A DNA stretch of 64,000 nucleotides, taken from NCBI RefSeq assembly GCF_033153115.1, contig NW_026889779.1, positions 3,472,001 to 3,536,000 of the forward strand, given 5' to 3'. A model generated the notes under the pieces. It was not told the origin of the DNA. It saw only the letters and a list, made by a program, of their open reading frames with translations, and ran no database searches. Source of the DNA: Saccostrea echinata. Taxonomy: Eukaryota. Each line of letters starts with the position of its first letter. Position 1 is the stretch's first letter. Below, piece after piece: positions 38,325-50,115 of the stretch. The translations under genes were made by a program, and so were the position numbers.

Positions 38325-41300
38325 ATGAATAACGCATTACGGTTATGTGCAGTGTGTATCCTCTGGACACTTTCTGCAAAAGCTCAGACTGATTTAACCA
38401 GAGTCGCAGATAGTTATGGACCTTTGGTTGTTGAAACAACAGTCAAACTACTCCGTGATGCATGTTTAATTAATGACCACTTATTTCTTCGACGAATTGC
38501 CTCTTTTGAGACTAATGATGGCCTTGCTATTCTGCCGGGGGACCACGGTGGTATCTGGAAGGTAAACCATACGAAAAACCTTTCGCATCACACTGAATGA
38601 TTGACAGTCATTTTTTTTTTAAGAAATTGAATTTAAATTTTGAGAGCAAAATACCATGCTGGAAAATAAAAGCGGTCGGTAATTTATTTTACATGTACTC
38701 TGGATTATGAGATTTAAAGTACATGTATGTTAGAAATGTTTTCCAAAAGAATTTTGATTTAAATTTTGACACTAATACCGAAAAATTACGCATCGCACAA
38801 ACAAAATACGTAAACACAGTTTTCATGAATATTTATTATCGTACGAACTCGAATTATCACACTTGCAAACCTACCGACGAATATGTGAAACATGTTGGAA
38901 AAACATGTTTTTATTCGTGTCTCTTGTAACATTTTTAATTTTCTTTCACAACTGAAATTTATTTCTGTGAACAATATTCCGTTCAAGCGTATATATATGG
39001 TTTTGATGCTTTTTAAAGCTAGAAAATTCTATTTAATTCATTTGATTTCTCCTTTTCCAATGATTCATTGAGATCTGAGGTTCTAAATTCCGTAACCATC
39101 AGGAATCGAAATAAATTTGGCTTACATGAAAAAAGAAATGCATTTGTGTGAGCTATTTGGTTCTATCAGTAGTTTCGGACCACATCACTTTAAGGTCATA
39201 GGATATTCAAAATCGGGAGAAAGTAGTATTTTACTATAGCTACTTATAACTTGTTGTGTTTAGACTCAAACTGATTTGTTTCAAAATAAAAGTAAGGCTA
39301 AATTTTATGTGTTTTTAGGGGAAATAAATTTTTCTCATGATTTTAAATTTCAATATACGCGTAGATATAGAAGTATAGATTTGGGGAGAGTGCAAAAATA
39401 AGTGTGGCTTGACAGGAAAACTTCGTTATAAATACTAGTATGTGTTTTAGCAATAATAAAGCCTTCGTGTACTAACTATTTTATATATTTCTTAGTAGAA
39501 ATATATGTCTTTGAGTATTTTTGTACATAACGAGGTGTCAATATAGCTCTGATTTATATATAGGTGGATGAGGAAATGTTTAACTATACCCAGTCGGGAA
39601 CGCCCAATTTGCAAAACATTTACAAAGAGGTGTTCAGAACCCTGTTTGTGGTATGGAAAGGAATAACATGGAAAGAATTGAATAAACCCTTATATTCCGG
39701 ACTTGCTGCTGCAATTTATCTCAGAGCAAAAACCAACGAAACTATGCCCCTTTCAAAACCAGACCAAGCAAAATTTTGGAAGAAGTACTTTCGAACAAAT
39801 GGAAACGAACAAGCTTTTCTAACAGCAATGCAGGCAATGCCTGAAGGTAATTATAACTATTTTTATTTCTAATGCGTATTTTCAAAGATTACACAGTCTG
39901 ATTAACTTCCGGCGAATACCGGGGGTGACTACAGTTTTGTACTCGGTCAGTCGGTCAGTTAGTTGAACATTTTTTTTTTTTTTGAGATGCTTGCAGATGT
40001 TGAACTAATTTTTGGTACATGTATGTGGGTTACCTTAACTCACGACCTTCTGTAGATATCCATAATGATATTTTTTCNNNNNNNNNNNNNNNNNNNNNNN
40101 NNNNNNNNNNNNNNNNNNNNNNNNNNNNNNNNNNNNNNNNNNNNNNNNNNNNNNNNNNNNNNNNNNNNNNNNNNNNNNNNNNNNNNNNNNNNNNNNNNNN
40201 NNNNNCTCGGTATTGCATTTTCAGTACTCTCAAATTGCTAGTTTGATTGTTGATATTACATGTACAATATAATTTTCTGAGATATATTTTTTTCCGCAGG
40301 TTGCAGCGTCCCTACACAAGTAGATCTTACCTTCATTGTTGAGACGTCTACTAATGTTAAATCCGCAGAGCTGAGACAGACAAAAGACTTCATCAACAGG
40401 ATCGTAAACGGTTTAGTTGTTTCTAGTTCGAAGGTTCAACTTGCTATGGTTACATATGGAAGTCAGGCAAACATTTTATTTCATTTGAATGCCTACTCAA
40501 ACAAAATAGACGTGGTTTCTAACATTGATTCCATGCCTTTGAGCGGGGGATTGGTTGCTACAAATAAAGCCTTAAAACTAACGAGAGAAGAAGTATTCGT
40601 GGCCAAAAATGGTGCCAGAGCTGGTGCTGCACAAGTAGCGATCCTCATTACCAAAAGTCCGCCAGACAACAAGACGGAAACCGAAATCGAGTCCTCTATC
40701 CTAACCGGAAGTGATGTAACGCTATTCACCATCGCAATTGGTTCAGCCCTTAATTCAAATGATCTGGTTAACATCAGCAGCCAACCTAACTGTGTTCATT
40801 ATACTCACATAGACAATTTCTTGGATTTGCAAGACTTTGCTGCTGAAATGGATGAAGTTATATGTCGAGGTAATTATTTGACAAATATATATTTAGAAAA
40901 TTTCGAAAACCGTACTACTTGTAGAAAGTAAACATTTATAGATCAACAAGAAAACTTTTCTTAAACTGTTTTAATTCTTAACCAAATTACTCTCCATGAT
41001 TAAGTTATTTGTTCATTATCCAGCTATTATAAAGACCAAATCTTCATAAGTTTGGTATGCATTTAGCGCCAGTCAAATTGTCAAATGGAAGATTTACCCA
41101 TCCATGCAATGTGGATGCCTTACTTTCCATACCTGACAATCCTTACGGTACCACGATTAAGGTAAGAGCTCAAGATTAATACGCAATTCAAAAATGTAGG
41201 AAACTTGCACGTAATAACTTTACAAGGCCAATCCAAAATACAGTCGTTCAAGACTCTTAGTAAAGAATGATACAAACATGTCCATGACTTTTTATCAGAT

Positions 41301-47900: not shown

Positions 47901-50115
47901 GACGTTTTGAAATTTAAATGATTTTTTAATGTTAAGATACCATTTGAACACTTTATAGCCCCCGTTGTGCTGACGCCCAGTCCAATTGCATACACCTTCC
48001 CGTGTGGTTCTCCCCTCAATGTCGAAGTTCTCCCCAACCTCCAGGACGGGTCTTCAGTCAAAGTGCGTACATTTTTAAAGAATGCAATGAACATGATGAA
48101 TTAAATGTGTTTATAATCTTTTTAATACTAACATATTACAGAGAAAGAATTAAACTTATTCAGGAAAGTTGAAACTATACACATGTAATTATAATATCCC
48201 AAATCGTAATGGCTTATTACCTTTGCATTTTATGTTAGGTAAGTGTTAGAGAAGGATCAGTGACGATTTACGGATCAACCAGTGCCAAAGCCAGTTCAGT
48301 TCTAAATGAATTTCAGCGCATAACTACCTTTACCAGACCAATGACATTCTACATCAAGGGAAATAACACTATTTCCTTGGCTTTTGTAAGCAACCTTCCA
48401 GCATCATGTAAAAGTAACTTCAATGTTGAAGTCACACAAGGGGTCAACATTAGGCCAGGTAAGTGAAGAAGTGAATGAGTAATAGTTTCAATATTTAGAA
48501 ATTTTCATGATTAAAAATAGAAAAACTTGAAATTATGAAATTATATCATCTATGATACCATTTCCGACATATGTACATGTTCATTATTGTGTTTCCTTTT
48601 ACTTCACATCGACCATAATTTATATTAAAGCTTGTTCAAGTCTAAATACGCAAGACTAAGTACTTTCGTGTTGGGCATGTAATAAAGTGTCAACTGTTAA
48701 TTTTTTTTTTAAATTATTACTTCAGCATTAGAATAAGGCCCCAACCAGGATTTAGTGTTTTGAAAAGAAATATATGTACGTAGGAATTTAGTCTAAATGC
48801 TCTTCTACAGAACAACTTTAAATTCAATTCAAATTCCAATGGGTTTTTTTTTCTAATTATGATTCTGGGGTCAAGTTTAAGTTAACATAAATAAATATGT
48901 GTGTATTTGTATTTTCCCAAGAGTAACAAGATTATGATATGTGAAAGCAAGGCATCTATGCAGTCTTTAATATATAATGTCATCAGCTTAGTTTGGAAAA
49001 GGTATCGTTACATCAGTGTATTTGAGGGGAGAGAAAGAGGGCTGTGTAATCTAAATGAGTACAGTGGTCCATGAGCATTTTCTTTACATAGCTAGGTTCG
49101 TGTATATCTAATTCGTCTAAAAAGAGTGACAAATGTCCTTTTATTTACAGACAGTCAAGCTCTTTGTGTTGAAAATGACATTGTCAAGAATTGTTCCACC
49201 ACAACCCTCTTCAAGAGTCCGTTTTTAATCCAAGGACCTGGTACGTTATCCAATTCTCTATTCACCCTGTGCACGTGAATTAGAATTTAAAATCCAATCC
49301 CTTTGCTATGCGATTTATTTATTTTTTTCCATTACAATAATATTATATGTGCAATTATACATTATGGGAATTTAAGCGTCAATAATCAGTTGTATCTTGT
49401 AGGTGCTAATTTCTTCAGCCCATGTTCGCCACTCGTTGGACATATACAAATATTCCCATATCCGACAAGAAACGATCGTTTTATTTTCTGTGACGACAAA
49501 GGCCACACATTCATTGTATTATGTCCTCTTGGTGACGTGTACATTGCATCTTACCAGACCTGTGTCCCAGGACAGCTTTATATTGCCACAACAACCACCA
49601 CCCCTGTTGTTACTCAAGCGGTTGTTACCACAGAAAAACCCACCACACCAATCCCTGTCACAATCAGTCCGAGTCCCAGCCCAGGCACTGTCCAGAATCC
49701 ATGCACCCCCGAAAACATCATCAACCAACATATGTTCTTCCCATATCCAGGCAACGACCAAGCTTATATCGAATGCTACAACTTACCATACGTCGCGTCC
49801 GTCAAACTTTGCCCTGAACATCACTACTGGTCGCAAAAATATCTTACCTGCCTCTATCGAGATGTAGTCATTCTTAATCCAACTCCAACCACAGAGTCTT
49901 ATCACACTAATGCTGCCAACCCTTGTAATACTGTTCCTGGGCTATATTTTTATGCCATTGCCAACGAACCAACCAAGTACATCCACTGCGATGATTTTGG
50001 TGATGCTTTTGAGAAGACGTGCCCAGAACATAAGGTGTGGAACCAGCCTGTTCTACAGTGTGTTCCTAAAGGACTTATTATATATGACACCGCTAAACCA
50101 CCTGTTGTTGGGTAG
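44950..50115 (+). CDS. Secreted multidomain protein B, tandem paralogue of A; about 739 aa, 10 exons
   Basis: Exons 44950-45192, 45675-45954, 46711-46870, 46964-47138, 47397-47519, 47659-47770, 47959-48062, 48239-48458, 49151-49240 and 49403-50115 (2220 nt). Signal peptide; RRLAYVETQDG...GGIWQV; VWA with intact MIDAS (DASSS, GGGT, ITDG); 3 CBM14-like repeats; AATAAA at 50144. Confidence 0.87.
46214..46419. mobile_element. Tc1/mariner-type MITE (206 bp)
   Basis: TA|CTGTAAACCAACTTTTATTCGCGA ... TCGCTAATACAAGTTCGTTTACAG|TA, with internal TCGCGA repeats. Confidence 0.7.

Follow-up and report, generated by a model that had tools for sequence, protein, structure and literature searches.

Bivalves are known to have co-opted a phage lysis enzyme: the phage-type GH24 lysozymes (BCPL, T4-lysozyme type) underwent intron gain, duplication and gene fusion, are confined to Heterodonta and Palaeoheterodonta and were reported absent from Crassostrea gigas (Ren et al. 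2017, PMC5303276). Metazoan goose-type lysozymes, classed as GH23, have been proposed to derive from an ancient transfer from bacteria (PMC12855814). In molluscs, Pif/BMSP and other secreted shell-matrix proteins combine a VWA domain with peritrophin-A type chitin-binding modules, Pif/BMSP proteins in addition carrying Laminin-G remnants and acidic mineral-binding parts, and other VWA-chitin-binding proteins are stated to have arisen independently by domain shuffling (PMC11291548). Here we describe two neighbouring bivalve genes encoding secreted proteins that join an unnamed domain of predicted lysozyme fold, whose closest relatives are probable phage cell-wall-lysis proteins, to an adhesion (VWA) domain and three chitin-binding modules, which suggests a bacteria-degrading enzyme tethered to a chitin matrix.

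Two tandem multidomain genes in Saccostrea echinata

To follow up a prediction made from sequence alone, we analysed a 64,000-nt stretch of the Saccostrea echinata genome (GCF_033153115.1, contig NW_026889779.1, positions 3,472,001 to 3,536,000; hereafter the window). The original prediction had described tandem secreted proteins with four motifs in an N-terminal domain followed by VWA and chitin-binding modules, and this observation was confirmed. Two intron-bearing genes, A and B, are present on the forward strand, each encoding a signal peptide, an N-domain of approximately 153 aa, a VWA domain, an unassigned middle region, Thr/Pro-rich linkers and three CBM_14 modules (Table 1). All four motifs are present in both: RRIASFETNDG in A and RRLAYVETQDG in B; GGIWK|V and GGIWQ|V, respectively, each split by a phase-0 intron; LNKPLYSGLAAAIY in A and LRKPLFSGLAAAMY in B; and PLSKPDQAKFWK in A and PVGIEYQSVFWK in B. 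The N-domain pieces of A and B are 44% identical over 62 aligned positions for exon 1 (E 4e-15) and 33% identical over 94 positions for exon 2 (E 2e-14). A Pfam search found the VWA domain and the three CBM_14 stretches in each last exon but nothing credible on the N-domain exons.

The exon models were checked exon by exon, which revealed AG/GT at every internal boundary, no internal stops and CDS lengths divisible by 3. The assembly gap in gene A lies inside intron 2 (39847-40299), and no coding sequence is missing: the donor GT at 39847 and the acceptor AG ending at 40299 are both read, both genes have the same phase-1 junction (..G|CS..), and the abalone homologue P0016 aligns contiguously across it, with residues 81-174 matching 39564-39842 and residues 175-362 matching 40299-40865; RNA evidence for this junction was not obtained. 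The motifs are far beyond chance, as they recur in 8 paralogues of this genome and in 835 representative database proteins at E <= 1e-3.

Table 1. Features of genes A and B (window coordinates). P0016, P0034 and P0151 are database homologues, P0016 from abalone and P0034 from scallop.
Feature	Position	Strand	Description	Basis
Gene A	38325-44152	+	7 coding exons: 38325-38561, 39564-39846, 40300-40869, 41067-41161, 41898-42123, 42336-42515, 43284-44152; CDS 2460 nt, 819 aa	Frame, AG/GT and stop check; colinear tblastn with P0016, P0034 and P0151
A, predicted signal peptide	38325-38384	+	First 20 residues, hydrophobic core, ends ..SAKA	Inferred by eye; no signal-peptide tool was run
A, N-domain first half (exon 1)	38385-38561	+	Includes helix ..FLRRIASFE-T and GGIWK	Homologous to family profile positions ~1-57
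A, Glu62 codon	38508-38510	+	E of RRIASFETNDG, putative general acid	Family column and SLT profile position (see text)
A, N-domain second half (exon 2)	39564-39846	+	Includes W..ITWKELNKPLYSGLAAAIYL and Q..FWKKYF	Part of profile A1, which found the 835 representative proteins
Assembly gap (N)	40078-40205	.	Inside intron 2 of gene A, not coding	Splice sites, phase and homologues (see text)
A, VWA domain	40300-40869	+	One 570-nt exon; MIDAS-like motif ETSTN, degenerate	Pfam VWA E 4.3e-22 (on the ORF 40446-40931)
A, middle region	41067-42123	+	Exons 4 and 5 (41067-41161 and 41898-42123); no family assigned	No Pfam hit on exon 5; homologous to gene B 47959-48458 by position and by tblastn with P0034
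A, exon 6	42336-42515	+	Cys-containing stretch, then Thr/Pro/Ala/Ser-rich linker (TPATSATPATSATPATS..)	Exon check
A, last exon	43284-44152	+	Three CBM_14 (peritrophin-A) chitin-binding modules separated by Thr/Pro-rich linkers; stop codon 44150-44152	Pfam CBM_14 E 2e-12, 3 stretches
Gene B	44950-50115	+	10 coding exons: 44950-45192, 45675-45954, 46711-46870, 46964-47138, 47397-47519, 47659-47770, 47959-48062, 48239-48458, 49151-49240, 49403-50115; CDS 2220 nt, 739 aa	Exon check; colinear with P0034 over its residues 17-725
B, signal peptide and N-domain	44950-45954	+	Exons 1 and 2, phase-0 intron 45193-45674 after GGIWQ	Read from sequence; comparison with A
B, Glu61 codon	45130-45132	+	E of RRLAYVETQDG	Family conservation
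B, VWA domain	46711-47770	+	Split into 4 exons (160+175+123+112 = 570 nt); MIDAS motif DASSS intact	VWA E 6.1e-45 in the orthologue P0034
B, last exon	49403-50115	+	Three CBM_14 modules with a Thr/Pro-rich linker	Pfam CBM_14 E 1.3e-13, 3 stretches

The N-domain family, its predicted fold and its phage relatives

The N-domain has no Pfam or NCBIfam family, although it belongs to a large one: profile A1 retrieved 835 representative clusters at E <= 1e-3 and 374 at E <= 1e-10, and this genome contains 8 copies. Named members come from scallops, abalone, ark clam, oysters, limpets, a starfish, an annelid and two mites, and all are called 'uncharacterized' or named after the VWA or CBM domain.

A lysozyme-superfamily fold had been proposed from the motifs, and a predicted structure unrelated to it was named in advance as grounds for rejection. 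We obtained AlphaFold (AF2) models of the stand-alone animal member P0076 (pLDDT 90.3, pTM 0.82) and of the homologous domain from the IMG/VR phage contig L031 (pLDDT 88.4, pTM 0.85), and both bear the proposal out, with middling scores. VIA-align of P0076 against 48,161 PDB chains returned GH23 chitinase 3w6b (Z 8.7, rmsd 3.1, 118 aligned), MltE (Z 8.7, rmsd 3.7, 127 aligned), phiKZ gp144 (8.5), GH73 glucosaminidase (8.4) and Slt70 (8.3); by title, 37 of the 50 rows are lytic transglycosylases, lysozymes/muramidases, glucosaminidases, chitinases, endolysins or cell-wall hydrolases, and only rank 50 is clearly unrelated. The phage model gave the same list (MltE 8.7, Slt70 8.6, gp144 8.5, MltC 8.4), with no row whose title points to another fold. 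However, a Z of 8.7 is, by the tool's own note, about what models without a clear match reach (7-8, and more for helical proteins), and Foldseek found nothing in the PDB at E <= 0.001 for either model (best hits E 0.95 and 0.86, TM about 0.4), although its top ranks are also lytic transglycosylases in both. DSSP showed no beta strands in the loop where lysozymes have their hairpin. A search of BFVD found a 1021-aa uncultured phage protein (E 3.9e-6, TM 0.69, rmsd 2.5), and the nearest named clusters in the ESM Atlas are SLT, SLT/Lys, GH134 and Phage_lysozyme2.

Conservation of the proposed catalytic Glu had likewise been set out beforehand as a condition the idea had to satisfy, and it is satisfied by both window genes and by most of the family, but not all of it. 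The residue is Glu in 84 of 102 domain copies, with E-S or E-T in 83 of 101, but is Q or A in 4 of the 8 paralogues of this genome. In both models a helix (P0076 53-62, L031 45-54) ends at E-T or E-S. The two weak Pfam SLT matches available, of the family member P0005 (E 0.0026) and of the domain on a second IMG/VR phage contig, L030 (E 0.12), put the family Glu on profile position 24, where MltE E64, Slt70 E505 (precursor numbering), MltD E125 and MltC E217 of Escherichia coli also fall, assuming no gaps before the Glu. An hhalign comparison paired VES with the catalytic ES and GGIWQ with GLMQ, but only with P 0.057, and E. coli MltD itself reads VES..GAAGIWQI. Sequence links to SLT are weak: only 1 of 38 members has any SLT match, below the gathering score (17.8 against 21.3 bits), and the SLT profile, searched exon by exon, finds nothing in this genome at E <= 1. 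In addition, gene A has K for the Q of GGIWQ, and gene B has T at the mostly aromatic position 134.

An old phage or bacterial origin, suggested as possible in the original prediction, is also supported. Phage proteins of phrog_3108 and the contigs L030 and L031 carry the same domain at 37-55% identity, the L031 and L030 domains being 40-47% identical to animal members. The phrog_3108 profile matches P0076 at 3.7e-13, L031 at 4.1e-16, Klebsiella phage phiKO2 Gp54 at 3.7e-53 and Vibrio phage 1.083.O at 2.6e-25; the window's own exon-2 pieces do not hit it at E <= 0.01, and their membership rests on profile A1. In L031 the domain ends a 1005-aa protein that follows two 'internal virion protein' genes. 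phiKO2 Gp54 follows Gp53, a 101-aa protein with three hydrophobic segments, behind a late promoter, and no other endolysin is annotated or found in that genome. Gene 210 of Pseudomonas phage PSA28 is followed by a 113-aa protein with three hydrophobic segments and then by a protein whose N terminus looks hydrophobic by eye, the segment scan not having been run on this second protein. By contrast, in two marine siphophages the gene upstream has no membrane segment. In a tree, the 7 phage rows lie on one side of a single branch against 82 database rows, but this branch has only 70% SH-aLRT support, the tree is unrooted and many database rows have no known organism.

Interpretation and competing explanations

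Overall, the interpretation offered in the original prediction is supported. The analysis itself establishes that the N-domains of the tandem paralogues A and B belong to a large family that Pfam and NCBIfam do not hold, that this family has a predicted lysozyme/lytic-transglycosylase-like fold, and that it is homologous to the phage proteins of phrog_3108; the functional and evolutionary account that follows is inference, to which we assign a probability of roughly 0.6. In this view, the phage proteins act on the bacterial cell wall, standing beside holin-like genes or forming the C-terminal domain of a large protein that follows internal-virion-protein genes. In the animal proteins the domain would bind a beta-1,4-linked GlcNAc-type glycan strand in a cleft and cleave it, with the Glu at the end of helix 2 (E62 in A, E61 in B) acting as general acid, whereas the neighbouring Thr, the GGIW(Q/K) loop and the invariant Gln and Trp of the C-terminal half would hold the substrate. 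Peptidoglycan is the most likely substrate, although neither this role nor the chitin remodelling proposed alongside it was tested, and enzymatic, expression or localization data do not exist (two sequencing runs hold 0.37 and 0.32 of the sampled words, but are only guessed to be RNA). The three CBM_14 modules, the mucin-like linkers and the VWA domain would fix the enzyme to a chitin-containing extracellular matrix (a peritrophin-like gut or mucus layer, or the shell or periostracum framework), resulting in a matrix armed against bacteria. Paralogues with Q or A in place of the Glu are probably binding-only derivatives. The family most likely entered animals from a phage or its host long ago, then gained introns and fused to matrix domains.

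An unlikely but surviving alternative is that the domain is a non-catalytic, glycan-binding or purely structural module of a Pif/BMSP-like VWA-CBM_14 matrix protein, that is, a lysozyme-fold pseudo-enzyme comparable to alpha-lactalbumin or the chitinase-like lectins. The replacement of the Glu by Q or A in 4 of the 8 paralogues of this genome and in 18 of 102 copies overall, while the rest of the domain stays conserved (P101 in 179 of 181, S104 in 178 of 181, Q126 in 180 of 180), the loss of the Q of GGIWQ in gene A and the absence of a known activity for any member favour this reading. However, the retention of E-T in both window genes and of E-S or E-T in most copies is hard to explain without selection on catalysis, the phage contexts point to lysis or wall penetration, and no Laminin_G or other Pif-specific part was found.

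Somewhat less likely still, the domain might act on chitin rather than peptidoglycan, making the proteins chitin-anchored chitinase- or chitosanase-like enzymes that remodel the chitin scaffold of the shell, periostracum, gastric shield or a peritrophic layer. The CBM_14 modules put the enzyme on chitin, the joint best structural neighbour of the animal model is the GH23 chitinase of Ralstonia sp. A-471 (3w6b), GH19 chitinases are in both structural lists, and VWA plus chitin-binding proteins are common shell-matrix components (PMC11291548). Against this, the only homologues with an informative genomic context are phage proteins, where the target can only be the bacterial wall; many family members (stand-alone proteins of ~190 aa and proteins made of three tandem copies) lack any chitin-binding module; and the Z values do not separate chitinases from transglycosylases, since rows within 1 Z unit are tied. 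Finally, bacterial or phage contamination of the assembly or a chance run of motifs in non-coding DNA, for which nothing beyond the phage kinship itself speaks, is refuted as far as sequence can show by spliceosomal introns with AG/GT boundaries at the same place (after GGIWQ/K) in all 8 copies of the genome, in-frame fusion to VWA and CBM_14 exons, orthologues in annotated chromosome-scale animal assemblies and a GC content equal to that of the surrounding window.

Comparison with described systems

The likeness to Pif/BMSP, also drawn in the original prediction, is a resemblance of architecture only (VWA + CBM_14): Pif/BMSP proteins have no lysozyme-fold N-domain (lysozymes are not mentioned in PMC11291548), and their Laminin-G remnants and acidic mineral-binding parts were not found here. 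Goose-type lysozymes share with this family membership of the lysozyme superfamily in animals; by their GH23 class they should fall under the SLT profile, although this was not checked here, whereas this family does not. The bivalve GH24 lysozymes provide a precedent for co-option of a phage lysis enzyme but are a different family without a VWA or chitin-binding fusion, neither term occurring in PMC5303276.

Family-1 lytic transglycosylases of the SLT domain (Pfam PF01464, GH23; E. coli MltE, Slt70, MltC and MltD, and phiKZ gp144) are the best structural neighbours of both models (Z 8.3-8.7) and share a Glu followed by Ser/Thr at the end of a helix, on the same SLT profile position, and a G-x-x-Q loop, which in MltD even reads GIWQ. 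They differ in that no member of the present family reaches the Pfam gathering score, no beta hairpin is predicted and the C-terminal half (invariant Q126, W130) has its own signature.

The phrog_3108 proteins (phiKO2 Gp54, PSA28 gene 210, Vibrio phage 1.083.O gene 38 and Pseudoalteromonas phage B8b gene 26, together with the C-terminal domains on L030 and L031) are stand-alone proteins of ~160 aa or the C terminus of large virion-type proteins, without signal peptide, VWA or CBM_14; PHROGs lists them as 'unknown function' and none has been assayed. They are nevertheless true homologues over the whole domain of ~150 aa (identity to L030/L031 is 37-47%), with the same motif order: E-T/S, G-x-x-Q, a (K/S)P..S..A helix, then IP...A.YWKKYYN..G.GT.

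Gene structure and domain composition of the tandem pair

To establish the organization of the locus at 38325-50115, we read the coding exons of the two genes lying there in tandem and checked them one by one, which showed that all internal boundaries are AG/GT and that no exon has an internal stop. Gene B is colinear with an 'uncharacterized protein' of the scallop Argopecten irradians (P0034) over residues 17-725 of the latter. Each gene encodes, in order, a hydrophobic N-terminus that by eye looks like a signal peptide, an N-domain of about 153 aa split by a phase-0 intron after GGIW(K/Q), one VWA domain, a middle region for which no Pfam family was found and which was not modelled because it is split over exons, Thr/Pro-rich linkers and three CBM_14 chitin-binding modules in the last exon (Pfam E 2e-12 in gene A and 1.3e-13 in gene B). 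The spliced proteins were not joined, searched or folded, and the results below therefore rest on single exons and on homologous database proteins. The observation behind the original prediction, two tandem genes with a shared N-domain joined to VWA and chitin-binding modules, was confirmed, and all four N-domain motifs that it had named, beginning with a helix-end E-T motif and GGIW(Q/K)V, are present in both genes.

Positions of the two genes and of other features in the 64,000-nt window, and of related loci elsewhere
Feature	Position	Strand	Description
Gene A, 7 coding exons	38325-38561, 39564-39846, 40300-40869, 41067-41161, 41898-42123, 42336-42515, 43284-44152	+	2460 nt, 819 aa
Gene B, 10 coding exons	44950-45192, 45675-45954, 46711-46870, 46964-47138, 47397-47519, 47659-47770, 47959-48062, 48239-48458, 49151-49240, 49403-50115	+	2220 nt, 739 aa
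Intron 2 of gene A	39847-40299	+	Phase 1
Assembly gap (N)	40078-40205		Inside intron 2 of gene A
VWA domain, gene A	40300-40869	+	One 570-nt exon; Pfam VWA E 4.3e-22 on the piece 40446-40931
VWA domain, gene B	46711-47770	+	Four exons, 160+175+123+112 = 570 nt
MIDAS-like motif, gene A	40330-40345 (approximate)	+	ETSTN
MIDAS motif, gene B	46741-46756 (approximate)	+	DASSS, intact
Middle region, gene A	41067-42123	+	No Pfam match
Middle region, gene B	47959-48458	+	No Pfam match
Inverted repeat in intron 2 of gene B	46210-46237 and 46396-46423		28-nt arms, 89% complementary, 158 nt between them
DUF1759 ORF	12441-14762	-	774 aa, E 8.2e-37
Ribosomal_S2 ORF	33594-34205	-	Single exon, 204 aa, E 5.7e-40
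ORF with weak BcrAD_BadFG match	7090-8040	+	317 aa, E 6.3e-4, below the cut-off
Six further N-domain paralogues in this genome	Contigs C3 (3.279 Mb), C28 (4.718 Mb), C56 (2.813 Mb) and C30 (13.906-13.922 Mb)
phiKO2 region L032	46768-48190 of phiKO2		phrog_3108 gene beside a small protein with three hydrophobic segments (Gp53)
PSA28 region L038	34263-35571 of PSA28		phrog_3108 gene beside a small protein with three hydrophobic segments (gene 211)

The assembly gap does not remove an exon of gene A, because the donor and the acceptor of the surrounding intron are both read, the intron phase and the junction (..G|CS..) are the same as in gene B, and the homologue P0016 aligns without a break, with residue 174 ending at 39842 and residue 175 starting at 40299. 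Read-level proof of this junction was not obtained. Two sequencing runs hold 0.37 and 0.32 of the sampled words of 40300-50115, which is near the exon share of that stretch, but the runs are only guessed to be RNA, so that expression is a hint and not a finding. Comparison of the two VWA regions shows that three introns are exactly absent from gene A or were gained in gene B, and the degenerate MIDAS motif of gene A suggests that its VWA domain may no longer bind a metal ion. The inverted repeat in intron 2 of gene B looks like a small MITE-type insertion. Elsewhere in the window, the DUF1759 ORF also carries zinc-knuckle-like Cys/His motifs and a long coiled-coil-like tail and is probably a retroelement gag-type gene, the Ribosomal_S2 ORF is probably part of a mitochondrial ribosomal protein S2 gene, and the ORF weakly matching the BcrAD_BadFG ATPase family recalls, by eye, the HSP70-12-like genes that are expanded in bivalves, a resemblance that was not tested further.

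The N-domain family and its predicted fold

This genome has eight copies of the N-domain: genes A and B, three copies in tandem about 10.4 Mb further along the same contig, and one copy on each of three other contigs; all eight have the intron at the same place. A profile of the eight exon-2 pieces (A1) found 835 representative proteins at E <= 1e-3, 374 at <= 1e-10 and 2 at <= 1e-30 among 1.84 billion, of which we examined the best 150. Named members come from scallops, abalone, an ark clam, Saccostrea oysters, limpets, the crown-of-thorns starfish, the annelid Owenia and two mites, and are called 'uncharacterized', 'hypothetical', 'matrilin-2-like', 'Cartilage matrix protein' or 'Collagen alpha-1(XXI)', the last three being names taken from the other domains. 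The architectures vary and comprise the domain alone (~190 aa), two or three tandem copies, two copies plus CBM_14, the domain plus VWA plus CBM_14, and the domain plus VWA, six EGF and CBM_14; the Saccostrea protein P0007, which has six EGF domains, closely resembles the paralogue on contig C28. One hit, the 1245-aa protein P0049 from an ENA contig, shows 16 matched stretches of only profile positions 8-50, that is, a repeated fragment of the domain rather than whole copies. Pfam gave no family for the N-domain on the window exons, on 10 homologues or on 38 members, and NCBIfam gave none. HMMER searches of the PDB with the single exons and with the family profiles A2 and A3 found nothing relevant, A3 picking up only VWA structures through its multi-domain members.

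Structure prediction followed by comparison with known folds had been named in advance as a test of the lysozyme-like reading, and we applied it to two homologues, as the exons of the window genes were not joined. AlphaFold2 of the stand-alone animal member P0076, with 15 sequences, gave an all-helical domain (pLDDT 90.3, pTM 0.82) whose second long helix (53-62) ends at E61-T62. Foldseek against the PDB found nothing at E <= 0.001, the best hit being the phiKZ transglycosylase gp144 at E 0.95 and TM 0.40. VIA-align against 48,161 chains placed first the GH23 chitinase 3w6b (Z 8.7, rmsd 3.1, 118 aligned), MltE (Z 8.7, 3.7, 127), gp144 (Z 8.5, 3.5, 128), a GH73 glucosaminidase (Z 8.4) and Slt70 (Z 8.3), and the list then runs down to c-type lysozyme (5.5) and alpha-lactalbumin (4.8). 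By their titles, 37 of the 50 rows are transglycosylases, lysozymes, muramidases, glucosaminidases, chitinases, endolysins or wall hydrolases; twelve more are entries that hold, or are suspected to hold, such a domain (type VI effectors, EtgA, DslA, LytB, GH124, GH134 and two phage proteins), and one (rank 50) is unrelated. A second, independent model, of the domain on the IMG/VR phage contig L031 (pLDDT 88.4, pTM 0.85), gave the same picture, with MltE at 8.7, Slt70 at 8.6, gp144 at 8.5 and MltC at 8.4 and no row whose title points elsewhere; Foldseek was again non-significant but had transglycosylases in its first nine ranks. Because Z of about 8 is, by the method's own warning, often reached by models without a clear match, the argument rests on the uniformity of the two lists and on their coverage (107-132 of ~150 residues) and not on Z itself. 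In the viral structure library, the animal model matches a 1021-aa uncultured-phage protein at E 3.9e-6 (TM 0.69, rmsd 2.5) and small phage proteins of 148-166 aa.

Conservation of the proposed catalytic Glu among homologues was the other condition set beforehand. From a profile built on A2 we extracted 184 domain copies from 160 of 164 proteins and counted residues in the columns that were covered. The Glu is E in 84 of 102 copies, Q in 10, A in 4, D in 2 and other in 2, and the next residue is S in 65 and T in 32 of 101. G-G-I-W-Q is kept in 99/103, 97/109, 97/113, 98/119 and 85/128, and the most constant residues lie in the second half: P101 in 179/181, S104 in 178/181, Q126 in 180/180 and W130 in 165/180. 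In this genome the Glu is kept in gene A (E62), in gene B (E61) and in two of the distant trio, whereas it is Ala in the copies on C3 and C28 and Gln in the paralogues L004 and L008. The helix ends at E-T or E-S in both models, although the place of the Glu in the cleft was not inspected in coordinates.

We next compared the register of the family with that of known enzymes. Pfam SLT (PF01464) matches the E. coli transglycosylases MltE, Slt70, MltD and MltC such that E64, E505 (precursor numbering), E125 and E217 all fall on profile position 24, and the only two weak SLT matches in the family, the member P0005 (17.8 bits, E 0.0026) and the domain on the IMG/VR phage contig L030 (12.4 bits, E 0.12), also put their Glu on position 24, assuming no gap between the start of the match and the Glu. 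The gathering score of 21.3 bits is nevertheless not reached: no window exon matches the profile, 0 of 38 family members reach the cut-off, only P0005 among them matches at all, and the SLT profile finds nothing in this genome at E <= 1. Local hhalign against four E. coli enzymes, from which MltF was left out because its motif could not be placed, pairs VES with ES and GGIWQ with GLMQ, but only at P 0.057. As to the SLT motif series E-S, G-L-M-Q and A-Y-N-x-G, a Y-(Y/H)-N-x-x-G stretch exists in many members but is not conserved (position 134 is Y in 116 and F in 43 of 180, and position 135 is N in only 39 of 179), so that these observations speak neither clearly for nor clearly against the motif order. 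From the ranges of the structural alignment, the L031 Glu (E53) would lie within one residue of MltE E64 and of Slt70 E478 (mature numbering), a rough estimate because gaps are not shown.

Phage relatives of the N-domain

In the ESM Atlas the nearest clusters are unnamed, mostly viral proteins (score 0.94, 180-184 shared features), and SLT, Lys, GH134 and Phage_lysozyme2 are the nearest named ones at 0.84-0.85. A scan of IMG/VR found only two distinct phage types with the domain, on 3 contigs, at 37% identity to P0076 and 40-47% identity to several animal members. In L031 the domain is the last ~150 aa of a 1005-aa protein that follows two genes matching 'internal virion protein' PHROGs (1.6e-35 and 0.0012), and in L030 it ends a 462-aa protein. 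The PHROG phrog_3108 ('unknown function') matches L031 (4.1e-16), L030 (9.9e-7), phiKO2 Gp54 (3.7e-53), Vibrio phage 1.083.O gene 38 (2.6e-25) and the animal protein P0076 (3.7e-13; residues 51-174 to profile positions 28-156 of 160). For the window genes themselves the direct comparison settles nothing, as the exon-2 pieces alone give no match at E <= 0.01 and neither the exon-1 pieces nor the joined domain were searched; their membership follows from profile A1, which contains them and finds P0076 at E 9.8e-18. GenBank phages gave 13 records, all 'hypothetical' or unannotated. No relative was found in one genome each of 185,579 bacterial and archaeal species, but that scan needs exact motif patterns and says little about divergent prophage copies.

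We then examined the genomic context of the phage genes. phiKO2 Gp54 follows a 101-aa protein with three hydrophobic segments and a basic tail (Gp53), behind an annotated late promoter; no endolysin is annotated in this phage and none was found among the right-end genes Gp59-Gp64 that we scanned. In PSA28 the domain gene is followed by a 113-aa protein with three hydrophobic segments and then by a protein whose N-terminal anchor was read by eye, without a hydrophobic-segment scan. In B8b and Vibrio 1.083.O the gene follows a large gene and a small protein without membrane segments. These contexts fit an endolysin or a virion-borne wall-degrading domain, and phrog_3108 could be an unrecognised endolysin family, but this is inference; none of the proteins has been assayed. 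We also considered whether phiKO2 Gp55 and Gp56 form a spanin pair, which we do not claim because Gp56 has no lipobox and Gp55 has one hydrophobic segment in a crude scan; a spanin survey lists PhiKO2 among spanin singletons, and we saw no genes named for it there. Literature searches on phage lysis yielded nothing about Gp54.

A quick maximum-likelihood tree of 82 database domain copies (97 reduced at 75% identity) and 7 phage domains puts all phage rows on one side of one branch (SH-aLRT 70). Within it, phiKO2, PSA28, B8b and Vibrio form a firm group (99), and L030, L031 and a further phage row, L036, lie next to the animal side. The tree is unrooted and several database rows are of unknown origin; for example, P0114, the closest row to L031 at 55%, sits on a 1.1-kb metagenome contig. 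One old transfer from phage to animal is thus the simplest reading, but it is not shown.

Interpretation and comparison with known proteins

The interpretation in the original prediction, a lysozyme-fold domain of possibly old phage or bacterial origin, is supported at the level of fold and origin, while the function is still inference. Our analysis itself establishes the architecture, the family, the fold class (from models of homologues), the phage kinship and the conservation pattern; what follows on mechanism is inferred from them. In this view the domain binds a GlcNAc-type glycan strand and cleaves it with the helix-end Glu as acid, as family-1 transglycosylases and lysozymes do, and peptidoglycan is the likeliest substrate because it is the only possible target in phages. 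Cleavage of the MurNAc-GlcNAc bond, which would leave a 1,6-anhydro product for transglycosylases and a reducing end for lysozymes, was not assayed. CBM_14, the mucin-like linkers and VWA would fix the enzyme to a chitinous extracellular layer, and copies with Q or A would be binding-only derivatives. Gene A, with K for the Q of GGIWQ and a degenerate MIDAS motif, may be the more derived of the two. A purely non-catalytic role and chitin as the substrate are both still possible, whereas contamination of the assembly was rejected.

More tentatively, and at somewhat less than even odds, the family might be a further, so far unnamed class of animal lysozyme-type enzyme beside the c-, i-, g-, GH24 and GH25 types, taken from a tailed phage's lysis or ejection machinery before the split of several invertebrate phyla, then expanded to hundreds of lineages and fused repeatedly to matrix domains (VWA, CBM_14, EGF), so that chitinous barriers carry a covalently tethered bacteriolytic activity. 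By the same token, phrog_3108 would be an unrecognised endolysin or virion-lysin family of phages of Gram-negative bacteria. If the domain is active, invertebrate immunity gains a whole enzyme family that current annotation does not see, under names such as 'uncharacterized', 'matrilin-2-like' or 'cartilage matrix protein'. It would be a second, much wider case of phage lysis genes domesticated by animals, after the GH24 lysozymes of clams, and would show a design principle in which a lytic enzyme is fixed to chitin and to a VWA adhesion module rather than released in soluble form. For phage biology it would give a function to phrog_3108 and identify the missing endolysin of phiKO2-type telomere phages, and for biomineralisation work it flags a subgroup of 'VWA-chitin-binding' proteins that may be defence rather than scaffold proteins.

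Literature searches found no description of this domain, although they did not extend to supplementary tables, where shell or mucus proteome lists may already contain these proteins under VWA names. With Pif/BMSP shell-matrix proteins the two proteins share a VWA domain followed by CBM_14 modules, as does the orthologue P0034, but the Laminin-G remnants and acidic mineral-binding C-terminal part of that family were not found, with no Laminin_G or other extra Pfam family on the window exons or on the homologues P0034, P0016 and P0021; a VWA phylogeny, which would show whether the VWA domain lies inside the Pif/BMSP clade, was not made. A survey of VWA plus chitin-binding shell proteins never mentions a lysozyme domain (PMC11291548). 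The tandem CBM_14 modules separated by Thr/Pro-rich linkers agree with the tandem six-Cys modules and mucin-like linkers of secreted peritrophin-type chitin-binding proteins, chitin binding itself not having been measured. Animal g-type GH23 lysozymes are proposed to come from bacteria (PMC12855814). By their class they should belong to the SLT profile family, which this domain does not reach. The bivalve GH24 'phage-type' lysozymes are a precedent, but they are another family, reported absent from Crassostrea (PMC5303276), and no Pfam Phage_lysozyme match was found in the window exons or in 38 family members. Within the known lysozyme superfamily, what is new here is a separate family and its fusion architecture.
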